55,208 nucleotides of DNA, from contig NW_026933158.1 of assembly GCF_032062105.1 (NCBI RefSeq), positions 1 through 55,208 on the forward strand. Direction: 5' to 3'. The stretch is from Saccostrea cucullata (Eukaryota). Below are positions 10,868-54,000 of the stretch, piece after piece. The stretch's first letter is position 1; each line of letters opens with the position of its first letter. The notes beneath the pieces are model-generated. The model was not told the DNA's origin and ran no database searches. It saw nothing but the letters and a program-made list of their open reading frames with translations. The position numbers and the translations under genes are program-made.

Positions 10868-13800
10868 TTAACTTTGGGGAGAAATCCGGTTGCTAATAGA
10901 ATAAGGTAAAGGTGGAGGTGCTGGACGATTATCCGGTCCCATTTCAGAATATTCATGAGGCAAGTCAGTGGATCCTGCAAAATAAAACAGGTACTCTTAA
11001 AGACTGCGAAATAATTTTGAATTTTAAATAATTACAAGAATTCGAAATCAGTTTAGTGCTTCCTTACGATTCAGCTGAGAATAATTTTTCACAACAGTGG
11101 CTTTCTTTTTTGATGATTTGGCCTTTTCTAGCAATATTTTAGTATTTTTTAATTTTCTAAAATGAAAAAGTAATAATTGAAATTATATTATCACTTAAAA
11201 AAATTAAATATAAACTGATAAATACCTGTCATTGTTAATATTTCACAATTACATCATTTCTTCTTCTTATTGTTTGTTGAATCTCTGTTAATCACAAACA
11301 AATCGTCTATGTAGTTTGAAACGAAATCCTACCTGAACAGAAAAATATTAAACCCAAAAGAGATGAAGAGGATAGCCACACAAACTCCAACAACAGAAAA
11401 AAATGCGATGGAATGTAGACAAATGTTCTCATTAGCCGGTTCTACTACACTGGTACCTTTGAATATATAAATTTTGATTTGAAATTATATAAATAAGAAA
11501 TCCTTCAAATATAAAGAAATAGGTTTTTGATGCCTAGATATCAATCTTTCTATCCATTTCCATGAAAATCTTGCTCAACTTTTTAAACTTATGACAAAAT
11601 GTAATAAAACCCTTCTCTGGTATACATAATTCATGTTAAAAACATTGCATCAATCATGCATAGAACTTAAGAAATGATGACTTTAAACGAGACTGCTGAT
11701 ATCTGTTTATATTCTTTCGACTTCTTTTGAACTATTTTCAGAAGTATTTTCATTGAAAAAGTTATAAGAATAAATATTTAAGTACATAAGTATTTAAGTT
11801 TGGGGTCTCACTTTAGGTCATAACATACAAATGCTAGTATACATAAAACTTGGGAACGAAATAATTGAAAGCACTCTTAACAGAAACTAACCATCAGCAA
11901 AGACGTTGGAACCGGGGGCTTATCCCCTCATTATTTGCAAAGATGGACATAATATAGGCATCAAACATTGGGGTGTGGGTTTATCCCCCCCAACACACAC
12001 ACTTTCAATTTGTTTCCGACGCCAATGACCAGTAAATCATTTCTTATCTATTCTTCTTCAAAACTAGTAATAAAAACTTAGACTTTTGCTTACGGTTGGT
12101 GTGACCGGTTGGCAAGTGATGCTCACTCCTCTAGGACACGTGATCCCACCTCTGCTGTTTTAGAGATCCATTTTTCCTCTGCTCCTGATTGCATTGCTTG
12201 CATATTGTTCGTTATTTCCAATTCTATTTGTTTGAAATAGCTCATTTTGTTCCTCATTTTACTTTAATTGTGGACCTACTTATCATTACTATGGTACTTT
12301 ATAGAACTTATGTAGATATCATATTCCTTACTTGTTTTGTTTATCTATATCAATATCTCTAAGTTTTGTATCTTTTTAACGATTGATTGATTGACTGTAT
12401 ATTGTTTTACGTCCTGTTCGAGAATATTTCACTCATTACCAGTAATGCTACGTTCCCATTGTCGTGCGGTCAGTTACGCACGTCACGATACATCAATCGT
12501 AGTTGATCGCAGAGTTTTTATTGAATTTTATGCCAATATATGAAGTAGGTGTGTTTTCATACGTTTCCTTACGCTTTGATTATGCACATTCTTACTTTCC
12601 AATGTATTATGTCACGAAATTTGTGGACCGATATAATACTTATCATCTAATATGGTACTTTATAGGATCAAGATAGAACATGTACCCAGACAGACATATA
12701 AAAATCATATTCCATTATATTTTATCTATTGAAAATTAAGCTAAACATAAACATACAATCAATAATAATTTAAAGGTTGGTGACAACTTCATAAATGTGA
12801 TGTTTGTAGTGTAACTATGGTCATATGTTATTGCTGTTAAAGTAGAGCAAAAGCAGCAGTATAACTATTTCTTGTTCAGGTTCAGAAGAAGATAGGATCT
12901 CCCCTCTTTCTTTTTTGTACCTGTTTTAGGTGGCATCTTTAAAATATTTTTCTAAAAATCAGACTATCAATCGGTATCAATTTTCCCGTTATTTTTGCAA
13001 GCTTAAGTACTCGTAATATAGCGTGATTGTCCGCAACAAAGCGTTAACACTCGTGTCTAATGGTGTTTCTTACGTCCGTATCAAATCGTCTCTGAGCGGG
13101 ATTGATTGATTGGCTGTATATTGTTTTACGTCCGATGATCACGATATGAAAGCCAGAGAATATTTCATGCTCGATTACCAGTTAAGTAGGGCAAAAAAAA
13201 TTTACGATCAACACGATTCACGAGTGAACACAAGATTTGTTTCGATTTGATACGAGAACTACGATTTGTCCACGGTCGAGTCCCCGATATCAATCGTGGC
13301 GCCAATCGTGATAGTGGGAACATAGCATAAGGGGCTTTACATTTAGACCTTTACTCGACACGAAAGTTTTTTGCTCGACAAAGAGGGTTTTTATGGTTTC
13401 ATCCGAAGGACTCTCAATTTTCACTGCAATGTGCCAAATGTATAGCGATGAAACACTGCATTTTTCTTCGACGCTGATCCAGTTGCGGTCGCAGTTCGAA
13501 CCTACTTTACAAAATAAATATATATTTATTACTTAACAATAAGAAATACATACCAAAAACCTGAACCTCACAAAGTTCAGCAATTGTTGTGTCACGCCGA
13601 GATCCCAATGGAACGACAACTCCGTCGCCGCGTTCGTTATAATATGTGACGTAGCGTCCCCGTTGTGCACACGCATGTTTGGAAAGAAGAGGCGGAAATG
13701 TGTCAGTATTTTTATAACATCGGTAACCATCCTTAAGTTTTGTCGTATTTGATATGAACAGAGAAAATCCTGCATGTTCAGACATACGCAAAGAATCTGA

Positions 13801-18157: not shown

Positions 18158-18775
18158 AACTTTTCAATCATCAATTTTCCTTACTTATGCAGCGGTATAC
18201 CTTCATCACCTGCTTACGAGGTTTTTATCCTAAGTTGATTCGATACGCAAGAGCATGCTCTACTTATCAACAATTTCTAAAGGAGATAAATCATTGACAA
18301 ACAAGTTGCTGAAACAAAAATATCAACAGGTTATTTTAAAGTCATCATTTTGTTAGATCTATGGTCGATACAATGACCTTGTCAGCCAAATACAATTTAT
18401 CAGTAAGTCATATGGTGATTGAAGTTTTTGTAACAGTAATTTTTAGACAATTTCTAACACTGAATTGACGACGGATTTTCCCGTTTTTTCCCGATTATAA
18501 CAGAAGTACAAGGCGGGTGAGATCGGTCGACAGGGGATGCTCACTCCTCAATGACACCTGATCCCATCACTAATATTTTGGAGGTTCTTATATCCTCTGC
18601 TTTTATTCTGTATTTTTTAATGTACTTCTGAGCTTGAATACTGTTCATCTGAGGTGCGATTAGGCGCCATTAAGAAGTAGACATCTCCTGCCAAATGGTC
18701 ACACCAGCGGTGTAATCCTTGTCATGATCGGAAACTAACGGGAAAATCTGACGAAAATTCGGTGTGTAAATAATT
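18158..18775 (+). mobile_element. Penelope-like element 3' fragment joined tail-to-tail to an inverted piece (18651-18775)
   Basis: NFSIINFPYLCSGIPSSPAY..LIRYARACSTY..YGRYNDLV, then the 3' motif, immediately followed by a reverse-complemented, more diverged 3' motif. Confidence 0.8.
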
Positions 18776-26675: not shown

Positions 26676-28768
26676 TCAAGGTAAAACAAATAGTGTCAAT
26701 CACTAAGTGCTCTTTCCATGCATGTTCAATCATAAATAACATATTATAAGAGATATTTGTGAAAAGTAAGTCTAATTCGCGTCAGAAAGTGTTCATTCTA
26801 ATCTACATCATCCATGCAAATTTCGATTTAATTATGGCTAATATTCACTCATTCGCAGAATGAAGGTGTGATACAGCATCCAATGTAGAAGTGTCAATCC
26901 ATCATCATGTTTGTTCTAGATAGAGGTTATAGTTACTAGAGAATAGAACTGCTCCAAAAACTTTCATCCTGGTTATACTCATCTAGAAAATGCAAATCAA
27001 CTTCAGCATCCGAAGCAAATTTGGTAGTGGCTGTCCATTAGATGCATCCTCATCTTTATATATGTACATTTTAGACAAATGAAAGAGTTCTCATTTGTAA
27101 ATGCTATAAAATGACCTACCGGTGTGCTATGTGTACACGTTTTAGATTTGCTACTATTTGTGTCTTTGTCGACCACAATATTGTGGAACAATTTATCTCA
27201 CATAAAAGATATGCATTGAAATGATAAATAATTAGTAACAACGACATAATCTCGTGATTCATTTTTTTCTTGATTTTGCTTGCCTGAAGTTAATGAGACG
27301 TTTTTATTTTTCATGTTTAAATGTTTGTTTCTAAGCTAACTAACATTTAAACATGAAAAAAAAAACAGCCGCCTAAAATTATTTTTTGTTAGAAAATTGT
27401 CATTTCCACAAATATATCTAGTATTTCTTTACAAAACGCAAGTTTTGTTGTAAATAAATAGCTGTATATGAAATAACGTATATTCAGTACGTGTATATTA
27501 CATTAACACAAACGTGTTGGCATTGACTACTCACGATTTTCTACTATTTTTTCCCCTCAATTTCAATATTGACTTATACTGTTTATGGTACCGCGTGTTT
27601 TAATGGTGTTATTATTTTATCTAACAGTTTTCACAAAAATCAAGATATATAATCATAGAATGATTTGTCTTACCTTTTCATATGACTGTTTTCATATAAC
27701 TGTTTTGATGTCACAATATCTGACATTTATTATTCGTAGTCATTCATTGATCTGCATGAAAAGAAATATTCAATGATTTCTCTGATTATTAAGCAGTACA
27801 AATGATTTGTTAATGATTCAAGAAAGATATATATTTCAATTTTCAGAAGAAAAAGAACAAAACTTGAAGAACTGAACTGACTGAAATTCTACAGTATTAC
27901 TATTATATACGTTCATATTTAATAATGAAGGATATGGAGATAACGAACAGTATTCAAAATGAAAGCCCATAAAACAATACAAAAAAGGAGCTGATAATAT
28001 AAGCTAATCTACAATCAAACATTTGCATGACATAAAACCGCCGACTACGTATTTCGTTATGCACATTCATTGAAAAAAATTCTTTTAATCTTTAAGTACT
28101 GCAAATTTTCCGAAAGTTTTACAAGTTGTAAATGTATTTTAAAAGTAGGAAAATTCTTTTCACAGTTTCTTTGTTGACTTTGTACATTAACTTCATATAG
28201 AATATTATATATATTATTTAGCAATTGTTGAGGTGGGGATGATACATAGATGATTTAGACCATAACTCATCTATGCTGCATTTGAGACACGGACAAGAAC
28301 GAGGAATATAGTTTATGTGACTTTTTCATGTACTGTTAAATGGATGTGTAAATAGATACATGCAATGTGAATGCAAAGGTGAAAACAATAATAAAAACCA
28401 AAAAGTTCTTATTGTTTTCAGCATAGTTTTATTCATGGTATATCATTTACGTGAAAATAGTTCTCTCAGATAATCACAGGCTCCTAATGAGTACTTATGG
28501 CTTTTGTTCAAACAGGTATTATTTTCAACATGACTCCTGATTACTATATTCTGATACATGTACATTCACGTTCGCAGAAAATGAAAGCTCTGCTTCTGGT
28601 GACTCCTTTGTAATCTTCATTTATTACATGAATGCTACATGCTCAGTCTTAGTTCCCTCTCTGATCGGAACTCGTATTTTTCTTTACCGTGATATTTCAT
28701 CATGTAAAGAAACATTTCGTATTTATCTGCAAAGGTACAGATTGGCTATTATATCAAAGAAATTGTAT

Positions 28769-29548
28769 TCAGGATCCAACTGGAATTATATGATCACAAT
28801 TTGAAATAGCCTTCAGTGACGTTTTCACTTTGTGGATCAGTTTATAATATTTAGATTTCAATTTCCGGTTAGATATTAGGTCTTCCGGGCTGAGCCAATT
28901 GTCTATATCCTTCATCTGGTATCCACAGTTAAAAAGTATTTTGACAATTTTAGTACAGTCATTATGTTCTCCTGTTGCCACAAGATGGAGGGCAGATTGA
29001 CCAAGGTCGTCCACAACGTTGACGTCACTTCCGTGCTTGATCAGGTATTCTGCAATTTTAAAATTACCACCCTCCAAAGCTATCAGTATGGCAGTTTTTC
29101 CAGAGTTGTCTTTTTTGTTCACGTCTGCTCCTGAAAAAAATAATATGATTTTAAAATTTGTTCCACCGGTATCTATGCTATACTTAACATCATATTTAAA
29201 AAAATATTAAATAGCTTTTGAAATAAATATTTTGATCCTCGTATATATGTGAATTTTTAAAAACCTACCTGATTTCACGATCTTTTTCACCATGTCCATA
29301 TCGTTCATTTCGACTGCAACCATTAAAAGTGTTCTACCATCATCATTCGTCATGCTGGTATCAGCATAGGGTAGGAGAACCTTAAGAGTATCCATATCAC
29401 CATTAACGATTGGGATAAATATCAGAGGTTCTCCATTTTCATCCAGAACGTTAACATTGCTTCCAGATTTTATTATCTTTTGAAGTGCAGTGGTGTCTCC
29501 ATTGTAAACTGCTTCCATAAGGAAAGAGATAGAGATAGAAACATTCAT
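28769..29548 (-). CDS. ANK-4, ankyrin-repeat-only protein, 213 aa
   Basis: Exons 29548-29269 and 29130-28769, phase-1 GT-AG intron, intact frame. Confidence 0.9.
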
Positions 29549-29611
29549 TTTGTTAAGTTTGTTTCAAGTAATAGTTATGAAATAACTGTACTGATGAATA
29601 TTTTGTCAGCC

Positions 29612-30126
29612 CTTTTATACATCTTGTCTAACCTCATTAACAAACCAATAATTCTTCCAGGCATGTTGTCAATCCTATTGGTCAACACAATATCTTTAAC
29701 TACACAGAGAGAAAATTTCATTTGCTGCAAGATTTATCTTTCGGTAGACCACAATTAGTAAAAAAATAAATTTACATTTTCCTTGACTTGTCAAAGAAGA
29801 TGAGTATTTCTCTTCAAAAATTTGACAGGAGAAATGGGGTTTTACCATGAAGTGAAACATATATTCCAGTTGAAATAATTAATTCAATGAATCATACAGG
29901 AATAAAAAATTAATTTGATTTTCACATTGTTTATTGGACCAGTTTCCTTTTTTGAGAGAATAGCCATTGGAACACGCATTAATATTGCCGTTCGCGAGTG
30001 GAAATTTCGTTGACTTATTAATTAAATTAATATTTGTATTTAGTCTTAAATAATATGTTTTTTCTGCATTGCTTATAAACATTTTGGTCAAAGAAGAACA
30101 ATGAAATTTTATTTCAGGGAAATTCC
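29612..30126 (-). promoter_or_regulatory. ANK-4 promoter: TATA, CCAAT, RUNX-type, IRF-like and kappaB motifs
   Basis: TATAAAAG 29612-29619, ATTGG 29676, ATTTGCT 29720, GACCACA 29747-29753, GAAGTGAAAC 29849-29858, AGTTTCCTTTT 29941-29951, GGGAAATTCC 30117-30126. Confidence 0.6.
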
Positions 30127-30592
30127 TACTTATTAATTCTAATAAAAGCCCATCCAAACTATAAACGTTTCAAACATCTTCTCCTGTGAGATTGCTATTA
30201 AAATTATTTAAGATTGTGGTAGTTATCTAGATTTTTTAGATTAACTGCCGAGATCCATGTTTAATTTACACAGGTAGTCAAAGCTCCCCTTGACGAATGC
30301 TATCTGTACATAAGGCAAATCTCATATCATATTTTTCTAATTTGTTTACATCCCCATGATCAATATCCATGAGAAGTTTTGTTTAAGTAGGATGTATCAT
30401 TACTTTAGAAACGAATCTTTTCAAAAAACGTTTACCCTTTTACAAATCAATAAACGTTTGGTCGGATTCCGTATCCAGAGCATGTAAGATAGGATCAAAC
30501 ACTAAATGCACCATTCATGCAAGTTTAATCATAAATATCATAACAGACATTTTTTGTAAATAAGGTCCCATTCGAGTCACAAAGTATGGAAC

Positions 30593-30720
30593 ATATGGAG
30601 ATTACGAACAGTATTGAAGATCAAAAGTCCATAAAACAATACAAAATAGGAGTAGAGCAAACAAAGACCTCGAAAATATTAGAGGTGGATCATGCACCAT
30701 GGAGGAGTGAGCATCCCTGC
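30593..30720 (-). mobile_element. Penelope-like element 3' terminus
   Basis: tatggagattacgaacagtatt..agaggtggatc..ccatggaggagtgagcatccctgc. Confidence 0.75.
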
Positions 30721-30789
30721 AGTATACATGTGTTCTGAATTGTTAATTGAGGCTTTTTCAGAAAAAGGTCTCGATTTTTTTTTTTTTGC

Positions 30790-31067
30790 ATATTGTTTAA
30801 CGTTTCTCTCGAGAATTTTTCACTCATATGGAGAAGCCACCACTTGCCGGTGGAGAGCTGCAAATTTTGTCTTATAATACCCGGCACTTACGGCCATTGA
30901 GCAGTGTGGAATATTTTTCGTGCGACATGGGACTCCGGTTTATACGGTGTCATCCAAAGGACCGGTTTCCACGTCGCACAATGGGATTCTAACCTGCGAC
31001 GTAAGGATCAACTCCTTACTCCACGACTCAAGAATAGACGCTCTAATCATTTTGCCACCAGACGGGC
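30790..31067 (-). mobile_element. tRNA-derived SINE
   Basis: The minus strand has an A-box-like tggcaaaatgattagagc, a B-box ggttagaatccc, a central ggatgacaccgtataaaccggagtccc and the tail ..gaaacgttaaacaata. Confidence 0.75.
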
Positions 31068-33614
31068 GAAGTCTCGTTGGTAAATACTATAATATGACTT
31101 ACAAATGTGCTATTTGTACACATTTTCGATTTGCTATACATTTGTGTCTTTGTCAACCACATCTTTCCATTAATTGATGCACATTTTCTCCAACATAAAA
31201 AAACACATTAGATTGATAAATAAATAGTAAAAGCGGCTTAACCTTATGACTCATTTTATTGACTTTATCAGCCGCCTAAAGATCATTTATCTTGTTTGAT
31301 TTTTATTTTTTAAAAATTATTTTTCTGCATTTTAACTAGTTTCCCTAAATGCACATTATGCTGAATCTAAATATCTGTATATTTTATAACTAAAATTCAG
31401 TACATAACAACCAGACACTAGCGTTTCGATTAACTACAATTTCACAATTATCTACTATTTTTATTTCAGTTTGAATATCAACTTATGCTGTTTATGGTAC
31501 CGCATGATTTAATAATTTAATTACCTTATCTAAGAGTATGCAATATTCAAGATGTATAATCATCGAATATTTATACTTGCGTTTTCAAAAATGATTGTTT
31601 AAATGTTATTATACCTGACATATATTATTCGTAGTCATTTTTTGATCTCCATTAGACATGTTCAATAATTTCTTTCAGTTTTAAGCAGTACAAATGATTT
31701 GTTTAAAATTCGATCATGAAATATATTTTATTGGACCCTTACAAGAAAAAAAAAAGAAAAAAGAATTGATCAGACTCAAATTGTAAGAATTTTTTCTGTC
31801 ATACCATTATATATGAGGGGCATTTCAAAAGTCCTGAGAACTGTGTAATAGAAAATTTACCATTTCACGGAAAATATTTAGTTTGATATCATTGGAAAGA
31901 TCAGAAAAATATACACATATTGTGACGTCACTTTGTAATTTTTATGCATATTTACTTATTTGATACATGCTAATTCATAATAATGATATTTGTTAGATTA
32001 AACTATTGACAAAGTATGTCATAATGCACATTCAATGAGAATCATTTTTCCTTCTAAACTTAGAGTTTATTGCAAATTATCCGTACGTTTTACTCTCTAT
32101 TTATGGATTTAAGAAGGAATATTCACAGTTTCTTCATTTCCTTTAGAATTCCAGATTTTATTTAACAATTGTTGAGTGCAGTATCGTACATCTAAACGAT
32201 AACCTATTTAACTACGTTCGATCCTGATATTTAAAGTCTTAAACTTTTTCAGCCAAGTATATTTTTAGTTTTTGCATACATAGCTTAAGGGGTCAATACG
32301 CTTCTTTTGGCGCTACAGTACATTTAATATGACCTTTTTGCACTGAAATTTGTGTCTTAATCAAAAATAATATTTTTGACGTTTTCCCTCCAATATTTTT
32401 ATCCAATTAAAGCATGAAACAAAATAAACTCTAAGTTTGTTTAAAAAAAGACATTTAAAATTGTGACTAAGAAAAAGTTTCAAATTGCTTCGAATAATCA
32501 ATTATTTGACATTTCTGCACTAATAAAATGTGATTTTTCTGGCATTGAAAATTTAATAAGCAAGAAAATTATTTTAAAGTCTTAAAATTTTTCTGATTTT
32601 AAGCAAATAGGTCAAATTTATCTTGAATATTTAGAAAAGAACATCAAAAGTTGGGGTACATGTATATGATGTAAATTTTCAGATATTACTAAAAAAGTGT
32701 CAATTTTACGTTAAAATTGGTTCAATTTTCCCCCGGATTTTCAGAATATATTTATTATATTTGTCACACTTTGTTGATAGAATTCATAAGAAATAATTTA
32801 ATAGATATTTCAGAACCAGTATAACAAGTACACATTTCACTGCAAAAAACAGCTTTGTGTGCAACCAGGATGGGAAAATAGGAATCCAAAATTAAGAGTA
32901 CTGATATAGTTCAAAATGGAAAAACTGATCATTTTCGTCTAAAAAACCTTCCGCCACAAAATATAGCCCCTAGCTTAATTCTACTTGAAGGGAATTTAAT
33001 CGCGGTTTTTTCATTGAATATAGTTAAATTTGTACTGTATAATTCAGATTTAATGTTAGAACTTATAAACGATGCAGAATTTTATTAATAAAGGACCTGA
33101 CCAAAATATGCTAAAAATCTCAGGATCGAACGTCATTAAGCTGCATATAAAACACGAACAAGAACGTGAAATATAGTTTATGTTTATGTGACTTTCATGT
33201 ACTGTTAAATGAATGCATAAATAATATATACAACATGTATGCGAAGAAGAATAATAATAAAAACAAAAAAGTTTTGTTTTCATTTTTATTCATAGTATTT
33301 CACTTTAGTGAAAATACCTCTCTCAGAAAATCACAAGCTCTTTAACATGGATTTTGTGTACTACATTATGATGCTAGTTCTGATACTAGTACATACACAT
33401 ACATGTTCTTGGAAAATGAAAGTTCTGTTATTGATTACTCCTTTGTAATCTTCACTTTATACATGGATGACCCATGCTCAATCTGAATTCTCTCCCTAAT
33501 CGGCCGAACTCATACCAGTCGCATACTGCTTTACCATGACATTTCATCTTATAAAGAAGAATTTCTTAATATCTGCAAAGGTGCAGATTTGTTTTGTTAT
33601 CATGGATAGTGTAT

Positions 33615-34419
33615 TCAGGATCCCACTGGAATTATACGGTCACAATTTGAAATAGCCCTCAGTGACACTTTCACTTTGTGGATCAGTTTTAAATATTTAG
33701 TTTTCAATTTTGGGTTGGACATAAGATCTTCAGGGCTGAGCCAATTATCTATATCCTTCATCTGGTATCCACAGTTAAAAAGTATTTTGACAATTCTAGT
33801 ACAGTCATTATTTTCTCCTGTTGCCACAAGATGGAGAGCAGATTGACCAAGGTCATCCACAACGTTGACGTCACTTCCGTGTTTGATCAAGTATTCTGCA
33901 ATTTTGAAATTGCCGTCCTCCAAAGCTATCAGTAAGGGAGTTTTTCCAGAGTTGTCTTTCATGTTTACGCCTGAACCTGAAAAATAAATGTAAAGATTTT
34001 TTTGAAAAAAAATATTTCTCTGATGCTTCACTGAAATTCAAATCTAAAAGTCAAAAAATCTACATCTTATAGTTTTAGAAATAAATATTTGAATCATCTT
34101 TTGTGATATCTTTGAAAATTTTGAATCTATAAAACCTACCTGATTTGATTAATGTTTTCACCATGTCTATATCGTTCATTTCAACAGCAACCATAAGAGC
34201 TGTTTTGTAATCATCATTCGTCATGTTGACGTCAGAGTAGGGTAGGAGAACCTTAAGAGTATCCATATCACCATTGACGATTGGGGTAAATATCAGAGGT
34301 TCTCCATTTTCATCCAGAACGTTAACTTTGGTTCCAGATTTTATTATCTTTTGGAGTGCAGTGGTGTCTCCATTGTAAACTGCTTCCATAAGGTAAGAGA
34401 TAGAGGTAAAAACATTCAT
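33615..34419 (-). CDS. ANK-5, ankyrin-repeat-only protein, 213 aa
   Basis: Exons 34419-34140 and 33976-33615, phase-1 GT-AG intron, intact frame. Confidence 0.9.
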
Positions 34420-34875
34420 TTTCTTAAGTTCGTTTCAAGTGATAATTATGAAATAACTGTACTGAAAAATATTTTGTCAGCCTTTTTATATATCCTATCT
34501 CATTTCATTAACATACCAATAATTCTTTCCATGGCATACTCTGAATCCTATTGGTCGACACTCAAACAAATACACCAGCTCATTTGCTACAGGTTTTATC
34601 CTTCGGTAGACCACAATTTGTCAAAATTAAATTTACATTTTCCTTGACTTGTCGAAGGAGATGATTTTTTTTTATTTCATACACTTTCAAAGGAGAAACT
34701 GGGTTACACAACCGAGTGAAACATATACTCCAACTGCGAACATAAATTCAATGATTCATACATGAATAAGAAATTATTTTGATTTTTACTTTGTTTATTG
34801 CACGTGCATCCTTTTTTAAAACGACAATAGAAATTAAAACGCAATAAAATTACTGTTCTCAACTGGAAGTCAACA

Positions 34876-48172: not shown

Positions 48173-48689
48173 CCAAACTAAGTGTTCAACAATTTTTTAT
48201 GAAACATCTTAATTGACTTCTGGGATTTCATTCTACATGATCAATACATAGACCTAGTGGGGGTGGTGACTGCTATTAGGGATAACTACTACTCCTAAGC
48301 TTCTGATATCACCTCATAAATCTAGCACTCAAATATAACAGAATACCTTCAGGATAGTAAATAAGTTTATTTTATCGATAGATAAGAGATTAAATGGCTT
48401 GTTAAATGCTTTAAACATTTTGGTTCTATTAATTTAAGGAACAATGGGTAATATTAGTATATGAGTGCAGTTTATAATAATAAATAACATTATATAGTAA
48501 AAATGTTTTATATATTATATAAATGAAGAATATTAAATGAATATAGTTATTATATTATTATTATAGTTATTAAACGTATATAGTTATGCATAAATAGTAC
48601 TTTATTACATGTTTATAGTTTTTGACACATTATTTTTATATACATATGTACATATTTGTTTCATACTAGTATTTGGATATTTCACTTGA

Positions 48690-49200
48690 AAAAGACGCTA
48701 ACAAGCTCTATAAACGTAATGACTTTAACTTTTCTATCGTCAACTTCCCTTACTTATGCAGCAATATACCTTCATTACCTGCATACGGAGTTTATTTGTC
48801 TTCGATAAGCAAGAGCATGCTTCACGAATGAACAATTTCTTAAACGAGGTAAATTATTGACAAAAATGCTGATAAAACAAGAATTTCAGCAGTCTCGTTT
48901 AAAGTCATTATTTCGTAAGTTCTATGGTCGATACAATGACCTTGTCAACAAATACATTGAGTCAAATGTTAACTGACGTTTTTCATACTTATTGTTAGGC
49001 CATTATATATACACTGAATTGACGATCGCTTTTTCCCAATCATGACAAGGAGCACAAGGTGGGTGTGACCGGTCGGCAGGGGAGCTCACTCTTACATGAC
49101 ACCCGATCCCACCACTGATGTTCTTGAGATCCTGTTTGCTCTGCTCCTATCTTGTATTGTTTTGTGGACTTTTGATCTTCCATACTCTTCGTTATCTCCA
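48690..49200 (+). mobile_element. Penelope-like element 3' fragment
   Basis: KRNDFNFSIVNFPYLCSNIPSLPAYGVY..RLKSLFRKFYGRYNDLVNKY, then the 3' motif and the terminus ttcgttatctcca. Confidence 0.85.
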
Positions 49201-51429
49201 AATATTTTATTATATGATTAAAACTAATATAATATCTTCAACACAGTTTTTTTTTTCTTATCTTAGGAAAAGATAAAGCAATCAATAAGTTTACTTTTCA
49301 TTATCAATTTCAGTACCCTCACTGGTAGGCAATTGGCACCTCTGATAGATCGATACAATGTTTTATATTATTGTTACATGGAAGAACTCTAATTTCCGCC
49401 TCAATTCTTATAAACTTTACAAGCCCATAACTCGCGTAAACTATATAAGCAGTTTTCTGAATTTGACAATAATGAAATCGCTTTACTTTCTGATGCTTAC
49501 ACTCTAAAACAATAGTATATTACCCAAAACTTTTGATTATTAGTTAAACCCATCAGAAAAATGTAGTGTTAACTGAGGAGGGACTCAACTGAATTCCTAT
49601 TTTCATTGCTTTCTTTGTATGAAATTTTTAAAAATATTTTTAAATAGGCAATCACAGGGTACGTTTTTAGAAATAAGTGTCATTGTTGTTTTTTCTATCA
49701 TTATTTTTCTTTTTAGGTACATTTGTCCAGTAAAAATATTTAAAATATAATAAATCATATTTCTGTCACTTCATAAAGTACAAAACTGAGGTTTGATCAT
49801 TATTATCTCATTTTTTTCTCTTCTTCTACGAGAAACAATTAAAAAGATAGCAAGTATGAAAACTAAAAGAAATTTATTTACGACAAACTCAGTAATCAAA
49901 TGCAACACAGATTTACTATGCCCTCTGTATTTTTTCCATCGCAAAAATAAAATTTTTGTTTTGAAAGGCAGATGGCTCATCTGGTTGGCTGATACTTAAA
50001 CAAAATCTAAAGTGAAACTTATTTTTTACGCTAAACATTTTATGTGTCGGGGGACCACAACTGAATGAATCCTTGTAAAAAGTTTCCTTTGTATGTCAAT
50101 CAAATGAGTTTTCTTCCTTGCATGAACAAGATAAATTATGCTAATGAGCATGAAAAATATTTAATTATATTTTGAATTTCTCATTAGTAAAATAATTATC
50201 TGATACATTGTAATATACAATAATAATGTGATTCTCATCTCATTTCTTGCAAAAGTTATATAATGTAATATATCCATAACATGAAGAGCTATTTTAAGGT
50301 AAACATAGTCTAAATTAAACATTTTTTTAAAAAACAAAGAGATAGGTAATATAATGAGCCTTATACATTGAAATTAGTCATTAATAATATTGAGTGATGG
50401 TTGGTCAATTAGTTTTTGTAGCATACAACGTGGTATACTCAAATTAATAAAGAAAATGAATCTGTCATGTCAGTTTCGATTGTGTATTTAAAAGCTTCAT
50501 TTAAAAACTTACAATGCTTAAAAACGAAATGTAAAACTGCAAAAATTTATTAATTTATTTTTCAAATATTAACACGTATAAATGAATTTTTTTTTAATGA
50601 CAAATCCTTGTCTGAATTTTAAATATTCTATTACCTCAGTTACTGGAATAATTCTTCACTTATGAAGACTGACTTATTTTTAATTGGAATTATAAAAAAA
50701 AAATCTATTCAAAACTGAAGATAAAAAAATATATGAATCTGTATTATTTCTGGTGGCTCCTGAAAAAGAATATAAAAATCTTAAGTTCATTTTCTTTTCA
50801 ATATTTTTGCTTATTATCAAAATTGTATATTGCAGATTTCCTGTTCTAAATTCATATTAAATTTTCCCCAATTTCTTTTTTCCTTTTAATTTTTTTATTC
50901 AATTAGCAAAATTGTTTATTGCATTTTCATATTCTAGATATAATCAGTCTGAATGTTAGACCTAAAATAATAATAATTTCGTAAAAATTCTGCATTATAT
51001 GCTGACAATTTCTCCATGTATTTCTTATTGATTTATTATTAAACTAATTTAAAGGTTTTTTTTTAATTAATCTATCGTCAATTCTCCATATTTATTGAAA
51101 ATATACCACTTTCATTTTCGTTTGATGTTAAAATGCTAAATTATAATATAATTGAATGCTAATTATTTTTGCAAAAGTGGCCAGATTTTTGAAGTCAAAT
51201 CAAAATTTCTTAACCTTTTACTTGTGCTTGAAAGTTGAATTTCAGGACTCTTAGAGCTTGTAGTTTAGCCGTAAAAGGAAGCTTAACTCCAGCACGTCCA
51301 ATCTTGAAAATAAATGCCATGAGTTACAGTTCTTGCAATAAAGAATCGGAGGGAAAAACTAAATTCTAGATTTAATTCATGCTGGCCATGTAATTTCCTA
51401 TATAATTTTTGGAAAAAATGTATTTTAAA

Positions 51430-51931
51430 ATTCAATTTCCCTTATTTATGCAGCAATACAAATTTCATCACCTGCATATGCATATGGGGTTTATATCTCT
51501 CAGCTATTTCACTACCAAAGAGCATGTTCTACGTATGAACAATTTTAAAAAGAGGAAAGTTACTGACAAACCAGTTTAAGGAACAAAAATATCAACAGTC
51601 TCGTTTTAACTTATCATATCTCAAGTTCTTTGTTTCTTTCGATACAATAATCTTGTAAGCAAAACTTTTAATCAATAAGTCAAATGCTGATTGACGTTGT
51701 TCATAATTTATTGTTAGGCCAGTATGTACACACAGAGTTGTCGACAGAATTTTTTTTATTTCCCGATCATGACAAGGAGCATACGGCGGGTGTGACCGGT
51801 CGGCAGAGAATAGTCATTCCTCCATGGCACTTGTTCACACTTCTGATATTTTGGAGGTCCGTGATTGCTCTGCTCCAATTTTGAATTGTTTAAGGGAATT
51901 TTGAGCTTGAAAATTCTTTATTACCTCCATT
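51430..51931 (+). mobile_element. Penelope-like element 3' fragment
   Basis: NFPYLCSN..SPAY..GVYISQL plus ggcgggtgtgaccggtcggcag. Confidence 0.8.
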
Positions 51932-53614: not shown

Positions 53615-54000
53615 TATGACTTCAACAATCAACTTCCCTAAACTTATGAAGCAATATACCCTTGTCGCTTGCATATGGCATTTATATATCTCAGTTGATA
53701 TATCTAACGTATGAACACTATGTAATACAAGTTTTTACAAGTTGATGAAACAAGAGCATGTTTAACGTATGAACAATATCTACAATACTTTATAAGCAAT
53801 ATAGTTTTTGACAAAACAAAAGCCATTGTTTACATGCTGAACTGTCTACGGATTTTCAGTTTTTTCGAGCATGACAAGGAGCATACAGCGGGTGTGACCG
53901 GTCAGCAGGAGATGCTCACTCCTCCATGGTCCCTGTTTGCTCTGCTACTATTTTGTAATGTTTATTGGACGTTTTAGCTCGAATACTGTTCGTTATCTCC
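53615..54000 (+). mobile_element. Penelope-like element 3' fragment, internally deleted
   Basis: INFP.L.SNIP..AYGIYISQLI, then gcgggtgtgaccggtcagcaggagatgctcactcctccatgg and gaatactgttcgttatctcc. Confidence 0.8.

Follow-up and report, generated by a model that had tools for sequence, protein, structure and literature searches.

A covariation-supported RNA domain with a self-complementary 8-mer in the 3' tail of Naiad-type Penelope-like retrotransposons of several bivalve assemblies

We found that a short GC-rich island, repeated across a 55,208-nt stretch of Saccostrea cucullata DNA (assembly GCF_032062105.1, contig NW_026933158.1, positions 1 to 55,208, hereafter the window), is the core of a folded, sense-strand RNA domain of about 95-115 nt in the 3' UTR of Naiad-type Penelope-like elements, which encode an N-terminal GIY-YIG endonuclease and a reverse transcriptase (RT). 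The fold is kept by compensating mutations across about seven Naiad families from five other assemblies plus this genome, and it carries an 8-nt palindrome that could let two RNA copies pair. A sequence-only reading of the window had noticed the island in seven copies and had drawn it as a pseudoknot with four helices, P0 (GGYGG/CCACC), P1 (GUGU/RCAC) crossing P2 (GGUCRG/CYGAUY), and hairpin P3 (AGGRG/YUCYU), suggesting either an unrecognized self-cleaving motif or an RT-docking pseudoknot. Its observation of the island held up in full. Its interpretation is only partly supported, because a conserved RNA structure does exist at this place in a Naiad-type element, but it is not the pseudoknot that was drawn.

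The 17-mer GGYGGGTGTGACCGGTC at the start of the island, allowing up to 3 mismatches, hits seven places in the window, 5038-5054(-), 9150-9166(-), 12094-12110(+), 18512-18528(+), 49058-49074(+), 51785-51801(+) and 53887-53903(+), where 0.01 hits are expected from shuffles, and these are the places that had been listed. The copies align over about 200 nt rather than 57, from about 30 nt upstream to about 125 nt downstream of the island. In the 1.17-Gb genome the 186-nt tail has 5,786 first-look candidates, which we take as at least about 5,700 candidate copies, and RT fragments of the same element have 27,000-36,000. Thirty fetched copies share one sharp 3' boundary, at about position 182 of the query, and have variable 5' truncation, which is the retrotransposon pattern. 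In several loci of this genome (L001, L004, L007, L010, L026 and L029), a second copy of the tail lies in inverted orientation within 1.5 kb of the first, and these are the inverted insertions described for Penelope-like elements.

One intact copy, at positions 1892-4966 of locus L043, has an open frame of 1,024 aa with a GIY-YIG motif near the N-terminus and RT motifs in the C-terminal half, the permuted order that defines Naiad/Chlamys Penelope-like elements (PMC8557442). Its stop codon is followed by a 3' UTR of about 220 nt that contains the island. The motif always lies about 50-60 nt after the stop codon of a Naiad-type element, and the domain starts 52-60 nt after it. The nearest named homologues are proteins of the pearl oyster Pinctada imbricata, at about 65% identity. 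The copy at 49050-49141 and the other copies in the window are laid out as follows, with scores from a covariance model (R1) described below.

48673-48998 (+): decayed C-terminal end of the Naiad RT ORF; the ORF pieces at 48673-48831 and 48857-48976 match the C-terminus of the intact 1,024-aa ORF, and the position homologous to the stop codon (TAG) is 48996-48998.
49050-49059 (+): 5' strand of the outer helix, pairing with 49131-49141; this copy carries a C-to-A change at 49057.
49060-49066 (+): 5' strand of P1, UGGGUGU here and CGGGUGU in most copies.
49067-49074 (+): 8-nt palindrome GACCGGUC.
49075-49098 (+): junction RRCA(G) and hairpin B, with the nearly invariant loop GCUYACUC; the stem is damaged in this copy, while the core is conserved in all families.
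49099-49105 (+): 3' strand of P1, ACACCCG here and GCACCUG in most copies.
49111-49130 (+): hairpin C, ACCACU/UGAGAU here and ACCUCU/GGAGGU in better copies.
49131-49141 (+): 3' strand of the outer helix; this copy has lost one G.
49142-49211 (+): 3' tail of the element up to its common 3' boundary.
4967-5064 (-): second copy of the domain, the best preserved in the window, 99.8 bits.
9079-9176 (-): copy of the domain, 72 bits.
12084-12181 (+): copy of the domain, 5'-truncated just upstream, 46.9 bits.
18502-18599 (+): copy of the domain, 73.8 bits.
51775-51872 (+): copy of the domain, 71.7 bits.
53877-53982 (+): copy of the domain with a 30-nt internal deletion, 38.8 bits.
30653-30739 (-): degenerate copy, absent from the sequence-only list, 37.8 bits, E 1e-7.
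44417-44512 (-): degenerate copy, also absent from that list, with the palindrome intact, 24.9 bits, E 5e-4.

Between 19800 and 47400 the window also holds seven copies of a repeat of about 0.7-1 kb, spaced 0.7-7 kb apart, that encode ankyrin-repeat ORFs (for example 46632-46979 and 47090-47386, minus strand), and the Naiad fragments lie between them.

Folding of single copies gave no support for a structure, since the MFE z-scores of the 56-57-nt pieces (six copies) and of the 186-nt tail run from -0.8 to +1.0. Within this genome almost every copy belongs to one lineage. A search of the genome for divergent Naiad families, using a 54%-identical RT from another assembly, found only one dominant lineage, and a pattern search showed only close subfamilies. 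The differences between copies within the genome, on which the sequence-only reading relied, therefore cannot separate selection from decay.

To compare families, we took Naiad proteins at 41-69% identity and fetched the contigs that encode them, from Pinctada imbricata and four ENA assemblies. The tails behind their RT ends keep a 5' GGUG, a 10-nt stretch, RRCAG, and a nearly invariant GCUYACUC followed by CACCUGRU, while everything around these differs. We distinguish seven families, F1 to F7. We first scored the pseudoknot on a MAFFT alignment of 21 sequences from the seven families. It does no better than shuffles, with 79.5% of cells pairing against 78.4% (21 of 500 shuffles as high) and a covariation score of 0.230 against 0.215 (55 of 500). 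P2, the helix that makes the pseudoknot, pairs in 77% of cells, and two of its six pairs (27-67 and 31-64) are unpaired in 11 and 13 of the 21 sequences. P0 pairs in 72.6% of cells, its central pair (13-70) is unpaired in 11 of 21, and its bases are used by the outer helix, the P1 extension and hairpin C, which score better. P3 is 72% paired and holds in families F1, F5, F6 and F7. In contrast, P1 is paired in all 21 sequences.

The same comparison shows a larger domain instead. An outer helix closes a three-way junction, one arm of which is P1, carrying the palindrome, a purine-rich junction and the variable hairpin B, while the other arm is hairpin C. P1 extends to 7 bp (CGGGUGU/GCACCUG) and pairs in 21 of 21 sequences, with G-U/A-U/G-C at one pair and U-G/U-A/C-G at another. 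Upstream of P1, with no spacer, a strand of 7-12 nt pairs with a strand 20-45 nt downstream of P1 to form the outer helix, which covaries in all seven families. Each family's 5' outer strand binds its own downstream region far better than those of other families, with a summed duplex energy of -132.3 kcal/mol against -82.5 +/- 5.2 for cross-family permutations, and none of 3,772 permutations is as low. Hairpin C lies between P1 and the 3' outer strand, which it abuts directly, and it covaries too, for example GCCUCCC/GGGGGGU against GCCUUUC/GAAAGGU within F2. MFE folds of single sequences return this architecture in most families.

The eight bases after P1 are a palindrome in every family, and the seven families carry seven different variants, GACCGGUC, CACUAGUG, CACGCGUG, CAUGCAUG, GGCUAGCC, UGCAUGCA and GGCAUGUC, six of them perfect Watson-Crick 8-mers and one with a single G-U. 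The three inner pairs are 100% paired and all change on both sides. The two central, adjacent bases show five pair types and stay complementary although they cannot pair inside one hairpin. By a minimum spanning count, linking the seven variants needs at least 8 paired substitutions. Families that share an assembly carry different palindromes (F2 and F3 in L046, and F5 and F6 in L049, a Pinctada imbricata contig, VSWD01000010.1). The 5' strand that had been assigned to P2 is really the 3' half of this covarying palindrome, in which GACC pairs with GGUC.

On an unfitted MAFFT alignment of 8 sequences from F1, F5, F6 and F7, 97.8% of cells pair in the whole model against 85.3% in shuffles, 14 of 28 pairs change on both sides against 7.3 +/- 1.5 expected, and the score is 0.505 against 0.243. 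No shuffle in 500 reaches any of these values, and slid controls pair in only 37-51% of cells. Covariance model R1, built from that alignment, finds F2, F3 and F4, which were not in the seed, at E from 1e-8 to 1e-3. In these held-out families the outer helix pairs in 85.7% of cells, P1 in 98.8% and hairpin C in 81.7%, but hairpin B is poorly kept at 68.3%. Over 30 distinct sequences, 87.6% of cells pair against 75.9% in shuffles, hairpin B pairs in 83% of cells, and all 7 outer-helix pairs and all 5 hairpin-C pairs change on both sides. We note that this larger alignment is fitted to the model, that many of its rows are decayed copies, and that the structure was derived from the same sequences that were used to score it. 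By our sum, about 100 of the 703 paired cells in these 30 sequences are G-U, which would be mismatches on the antisense strand, so the fold belongs to the sense RNA.

The domain is not universal to Naiads. A more distant Naiad on contig L052 (848-4741) shows no match to the model in its 3' UTR; it and proteins P0107, P0108 and P0112 represent Naiad-like ORFs of about 1,300 aa that carry a ubiquitin hydrolase (UCH, PF00443) domain together with GIY-YIG and RT. A 43-47% identical Naiad family on contig L048 (12282-12402 and 13127-13247) keeps only CAGCUUACUC...CCUGGU and has other palindromes (CUCCGGAG, GGCGCC) upstream, suggesting a rearranged version of the domain. A partial metagenome scan with a 16-base core pattern gave almost only chance matches in prokaryotic contigs. 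Three short metagenome contigs (L123:555-675, L133:229-349 and L171:35-155) carry a related motif, with the CACUAGUG palindrome, GCUUACUC, CACCUGGU and a longer insert, but no detectable Naiad ORF. A more specific pattern gave 4 chance hits in bacterial and archaeal genomes and none in viral contigs. A likeness of GCUUACUC to the 5' end of U1 snRNA or to a branch point, a likeness to SINE core domains, and the idea that a pseudo-peptide common in bivalve gene models is a translation of this tail are conjecture only, and a full-text search for the core sequence found nothing relevant.

The position of the domain relative to the end of the element depends on the family. In F2a the copies diverge into TA-rich sequence about 6 nt after the outer helix, which fits the (TA)n target bias reported for Naiads (PMC8557442), while in F1 and F5 a tail of 60-70 nt follows the domain. 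In Pinctada imbricata (L049:371-1478) a non-coding 333-bp unit carrying the F5-type domain is repeated 3.3 times in tandem at 97% identity and interrupts the ORF of an F6-type Naiad between residues about 313 and 316. The unit has no Rfam match, and ARAGORN finds no tRNA head in it or in the window. It looks like a non-autonomous passenger that kept the domain, resembling a ribozyme-less, retrozyme-like passenger, although this is a single case. A 2026 preprint on retrozymes says nothing about Naiad tails.

Three raw oligo-dT RNA runs of the same species label cover the ORF end and the tail. Depth is about 35-90 per strand in most bins, with a local spike of about 140, and is equal on both strands. 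It falls to zero at the 3' boundary of the element, where reads run on into many different flanks. The tail is thus present in poly(A) RNA, largely as read-through from many copies. Depth is even through the domain, no place shows many molecules beginning or ending, and the raw reads show no joints, giving no sign of cleavage or splicing in the domain, although poly(A) selection could hide weak or 5'-product cleavage and the reads come from many copies. At L043:4776-4808 RNA depth spikes and many reads continue on both sides into one other, well-agreeing sequence; a 33-nt piece of the RT gene seems to be embedded in another abundant transcript or subfamily. At four positions inside or just after the folded domain (L043:5056, 5080, 5085 and 5138), the intact-ORF copy has G where nearly all RNA reads have A, an A-to-G cluster as expected from editing of double-stranded RNA before copying.

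What the analysis establishes is a conserved sense-strand fold and a conserved self-complementary 8-mer, and we are highly confident that the fold is real. From position and conservation alone we infer that the domain is the cis-acting handle by which the RT-endonuclease of the element recognizes its own RNA for target-primed reverse transcription, and that the palindrome pairs two RNA copies, so that both RT binding and RNA dimerization belong to the inferred part. Taken together with this inferred function, we hold the explanation to be only somewhat more likely than not. The 8-mer duplex alone has -9 to -15 kcal/mol, but cofolding does not single it out, because any hairpin can swap strands in a homodimer.

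Parallels can be drawn with four systems. The 3' UTR of R2 and the conserved 3' stem-loops of stringent LINEs and their SINE partners are likewise folded sense-strand RNAs near the 3' end of the element, kept by covariation and retained by short non-coding derivatives, but they belong to a different element class, and the Naiad domain has no sequence or Rfam similarity to them and has a three-way junction with a palindrome. The dimerization initiation site of HIV-1 and the PAL sequences of Ty1 are short self-complementary stretches, flanked by purines, that change sequence between lineages yet stay palindromic, with different palindromes in co-resident lineages; the Naiad palindrome is 8 nt long and sits in a junction next to P1 and not in a hairpin loop, and the element has no capsid or packaging. 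Canonical Penelope-like elements carry, in the equivalent terminal non-coding repeat (the pseudo-LTR), minimal hammerheads whose short helix III is closed by a palindromic loop and which act as dimers (PMC4209133). These also occur in tandem arrays, but their junction strands differ from those of the Naiad domain. The likeness to the three-way junction (CR4/5, TWJ) of telomerase RNA, which is bound by TERT, is topological only, the Naiad domain being a three-way junction RNA that would serve an RT of the telomerase-related clade.

The rival that survives best, although we consider it unlikely, is a structured 3' UTR element that serves RNA stability, export, 3'-end formation or translation and not RT recognition, with the palindrome forming only a small local hairpin. 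Structured 3' UTR elements with such roles are common, nothing here shows protein binding, and the monomer MFE folds leave the palindrome free or weakly paired. However, a local hairpin gives no reason for the two central, adjacent bases to stay complementary through four pair types, the 333-bp non-coding unit that keeps the domain has nothing to translate, and in one family the domain sits at the very 3' end of the element.

A new self-cleaving ribozyme, possibly active only as a palindrome-mediated dimer and replacing the dimeric hammerheads of canonical elements, is very unlikely on present evidence. Naiads are reported to lack canonical hammerheads (PMC8557442), as the sequence-only reading had stated, yet they have a palindrome-bearing junction RNA in the equivalent region, and the domain occurs in tandem arrays. 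Self-cleavage nevertheless has no support. No Rfam family matches the window at gathering scores, and none matches the tails of three families at E up to 1-10, the best hit being a chance hairpin match to a microRNA model at E 0.19. No hammerhead is found at the gathering score or at E up to 10, and no HDV-like, twister, pistol, hatchet, hairpin or VS ribozyme at E up to 1-10. There is no CUGANGA/GAAA core; only CUGAUGU, with no GAAA, is visible in the loop of hairpin C, and the junction strands do not fit a hammerhead in any permutation. RT docking, the other possibility raised at first, remains plausible.

The pseudoknot as first drawn can be discarded almost entirely, since all four helices can be drawn within the family of this genome but the model equals the shuffles across families. 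A DNA-level signal, such as a promoter or transcription-factor palindrome in the pseudo-LTR or a cruciform, is equally improbable. The pseudo-LTR holds the promoter in Penelope and Chlamys (PMC8557442), and palindromes are typical of dimeric DNA-binding proteins, but the palindrome differs in every family, so no single factor could read it, helices with about 14% G-U pairs fold on one strand only, and the outer helix and hairpin C covary without conserving their sequence. A SECIS element, as found 1-21 bp after the stop codon in the selenoprotein-encoding Naiads of clams (Craig et al., PMC8557442), can be dismissed despite an ATGA just upstream of the domain and a TGAT in the loop of hairpin C, because the intact ORF has no in-frame TGA, no SECIS model of Rfam matches at E up to 10, and the sequences next to ATGA and TGAT do not pair as a SECIS needs.

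A more far-reaching possibility, which we regard as unlikely but which would be of great interest if true, is that the domain is the functional stand-in for the dimeric hammerhead that Naiads lack, an RNA that works only as a palindrome-mediated dimer. It would then be either a new self-cleaving class or a two-template handle that lets one RT-endonuclease complex start two reverse transcriptions, and the second option would explain the inverted and tandem insertions peculiar to Penelope-like elements.

Naiads are among the most abundant retroelements of bivalves, with tens of thousands of copies, and they are the Penelope-like clade reported to lack hammerheads, for which no mode of RNA recognition has been described. 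We found no description of this covariation-supported RNA domain in Rfam or in the papers we consulted. The domain is a concrete, short object on which binding to an RT of the telomerase-related clade, RNA dimerization and ribozyme activity can be addressed, and the covariance model allows Naiad tails and their non-coding passengers to be annotated. An RNA dimer would offer two templates to one complex and could favor template switching or double priming, so the covarying palindrome suggests a testable, though still hypothetical, link to the tandem and inverted insertions typical of these elements.
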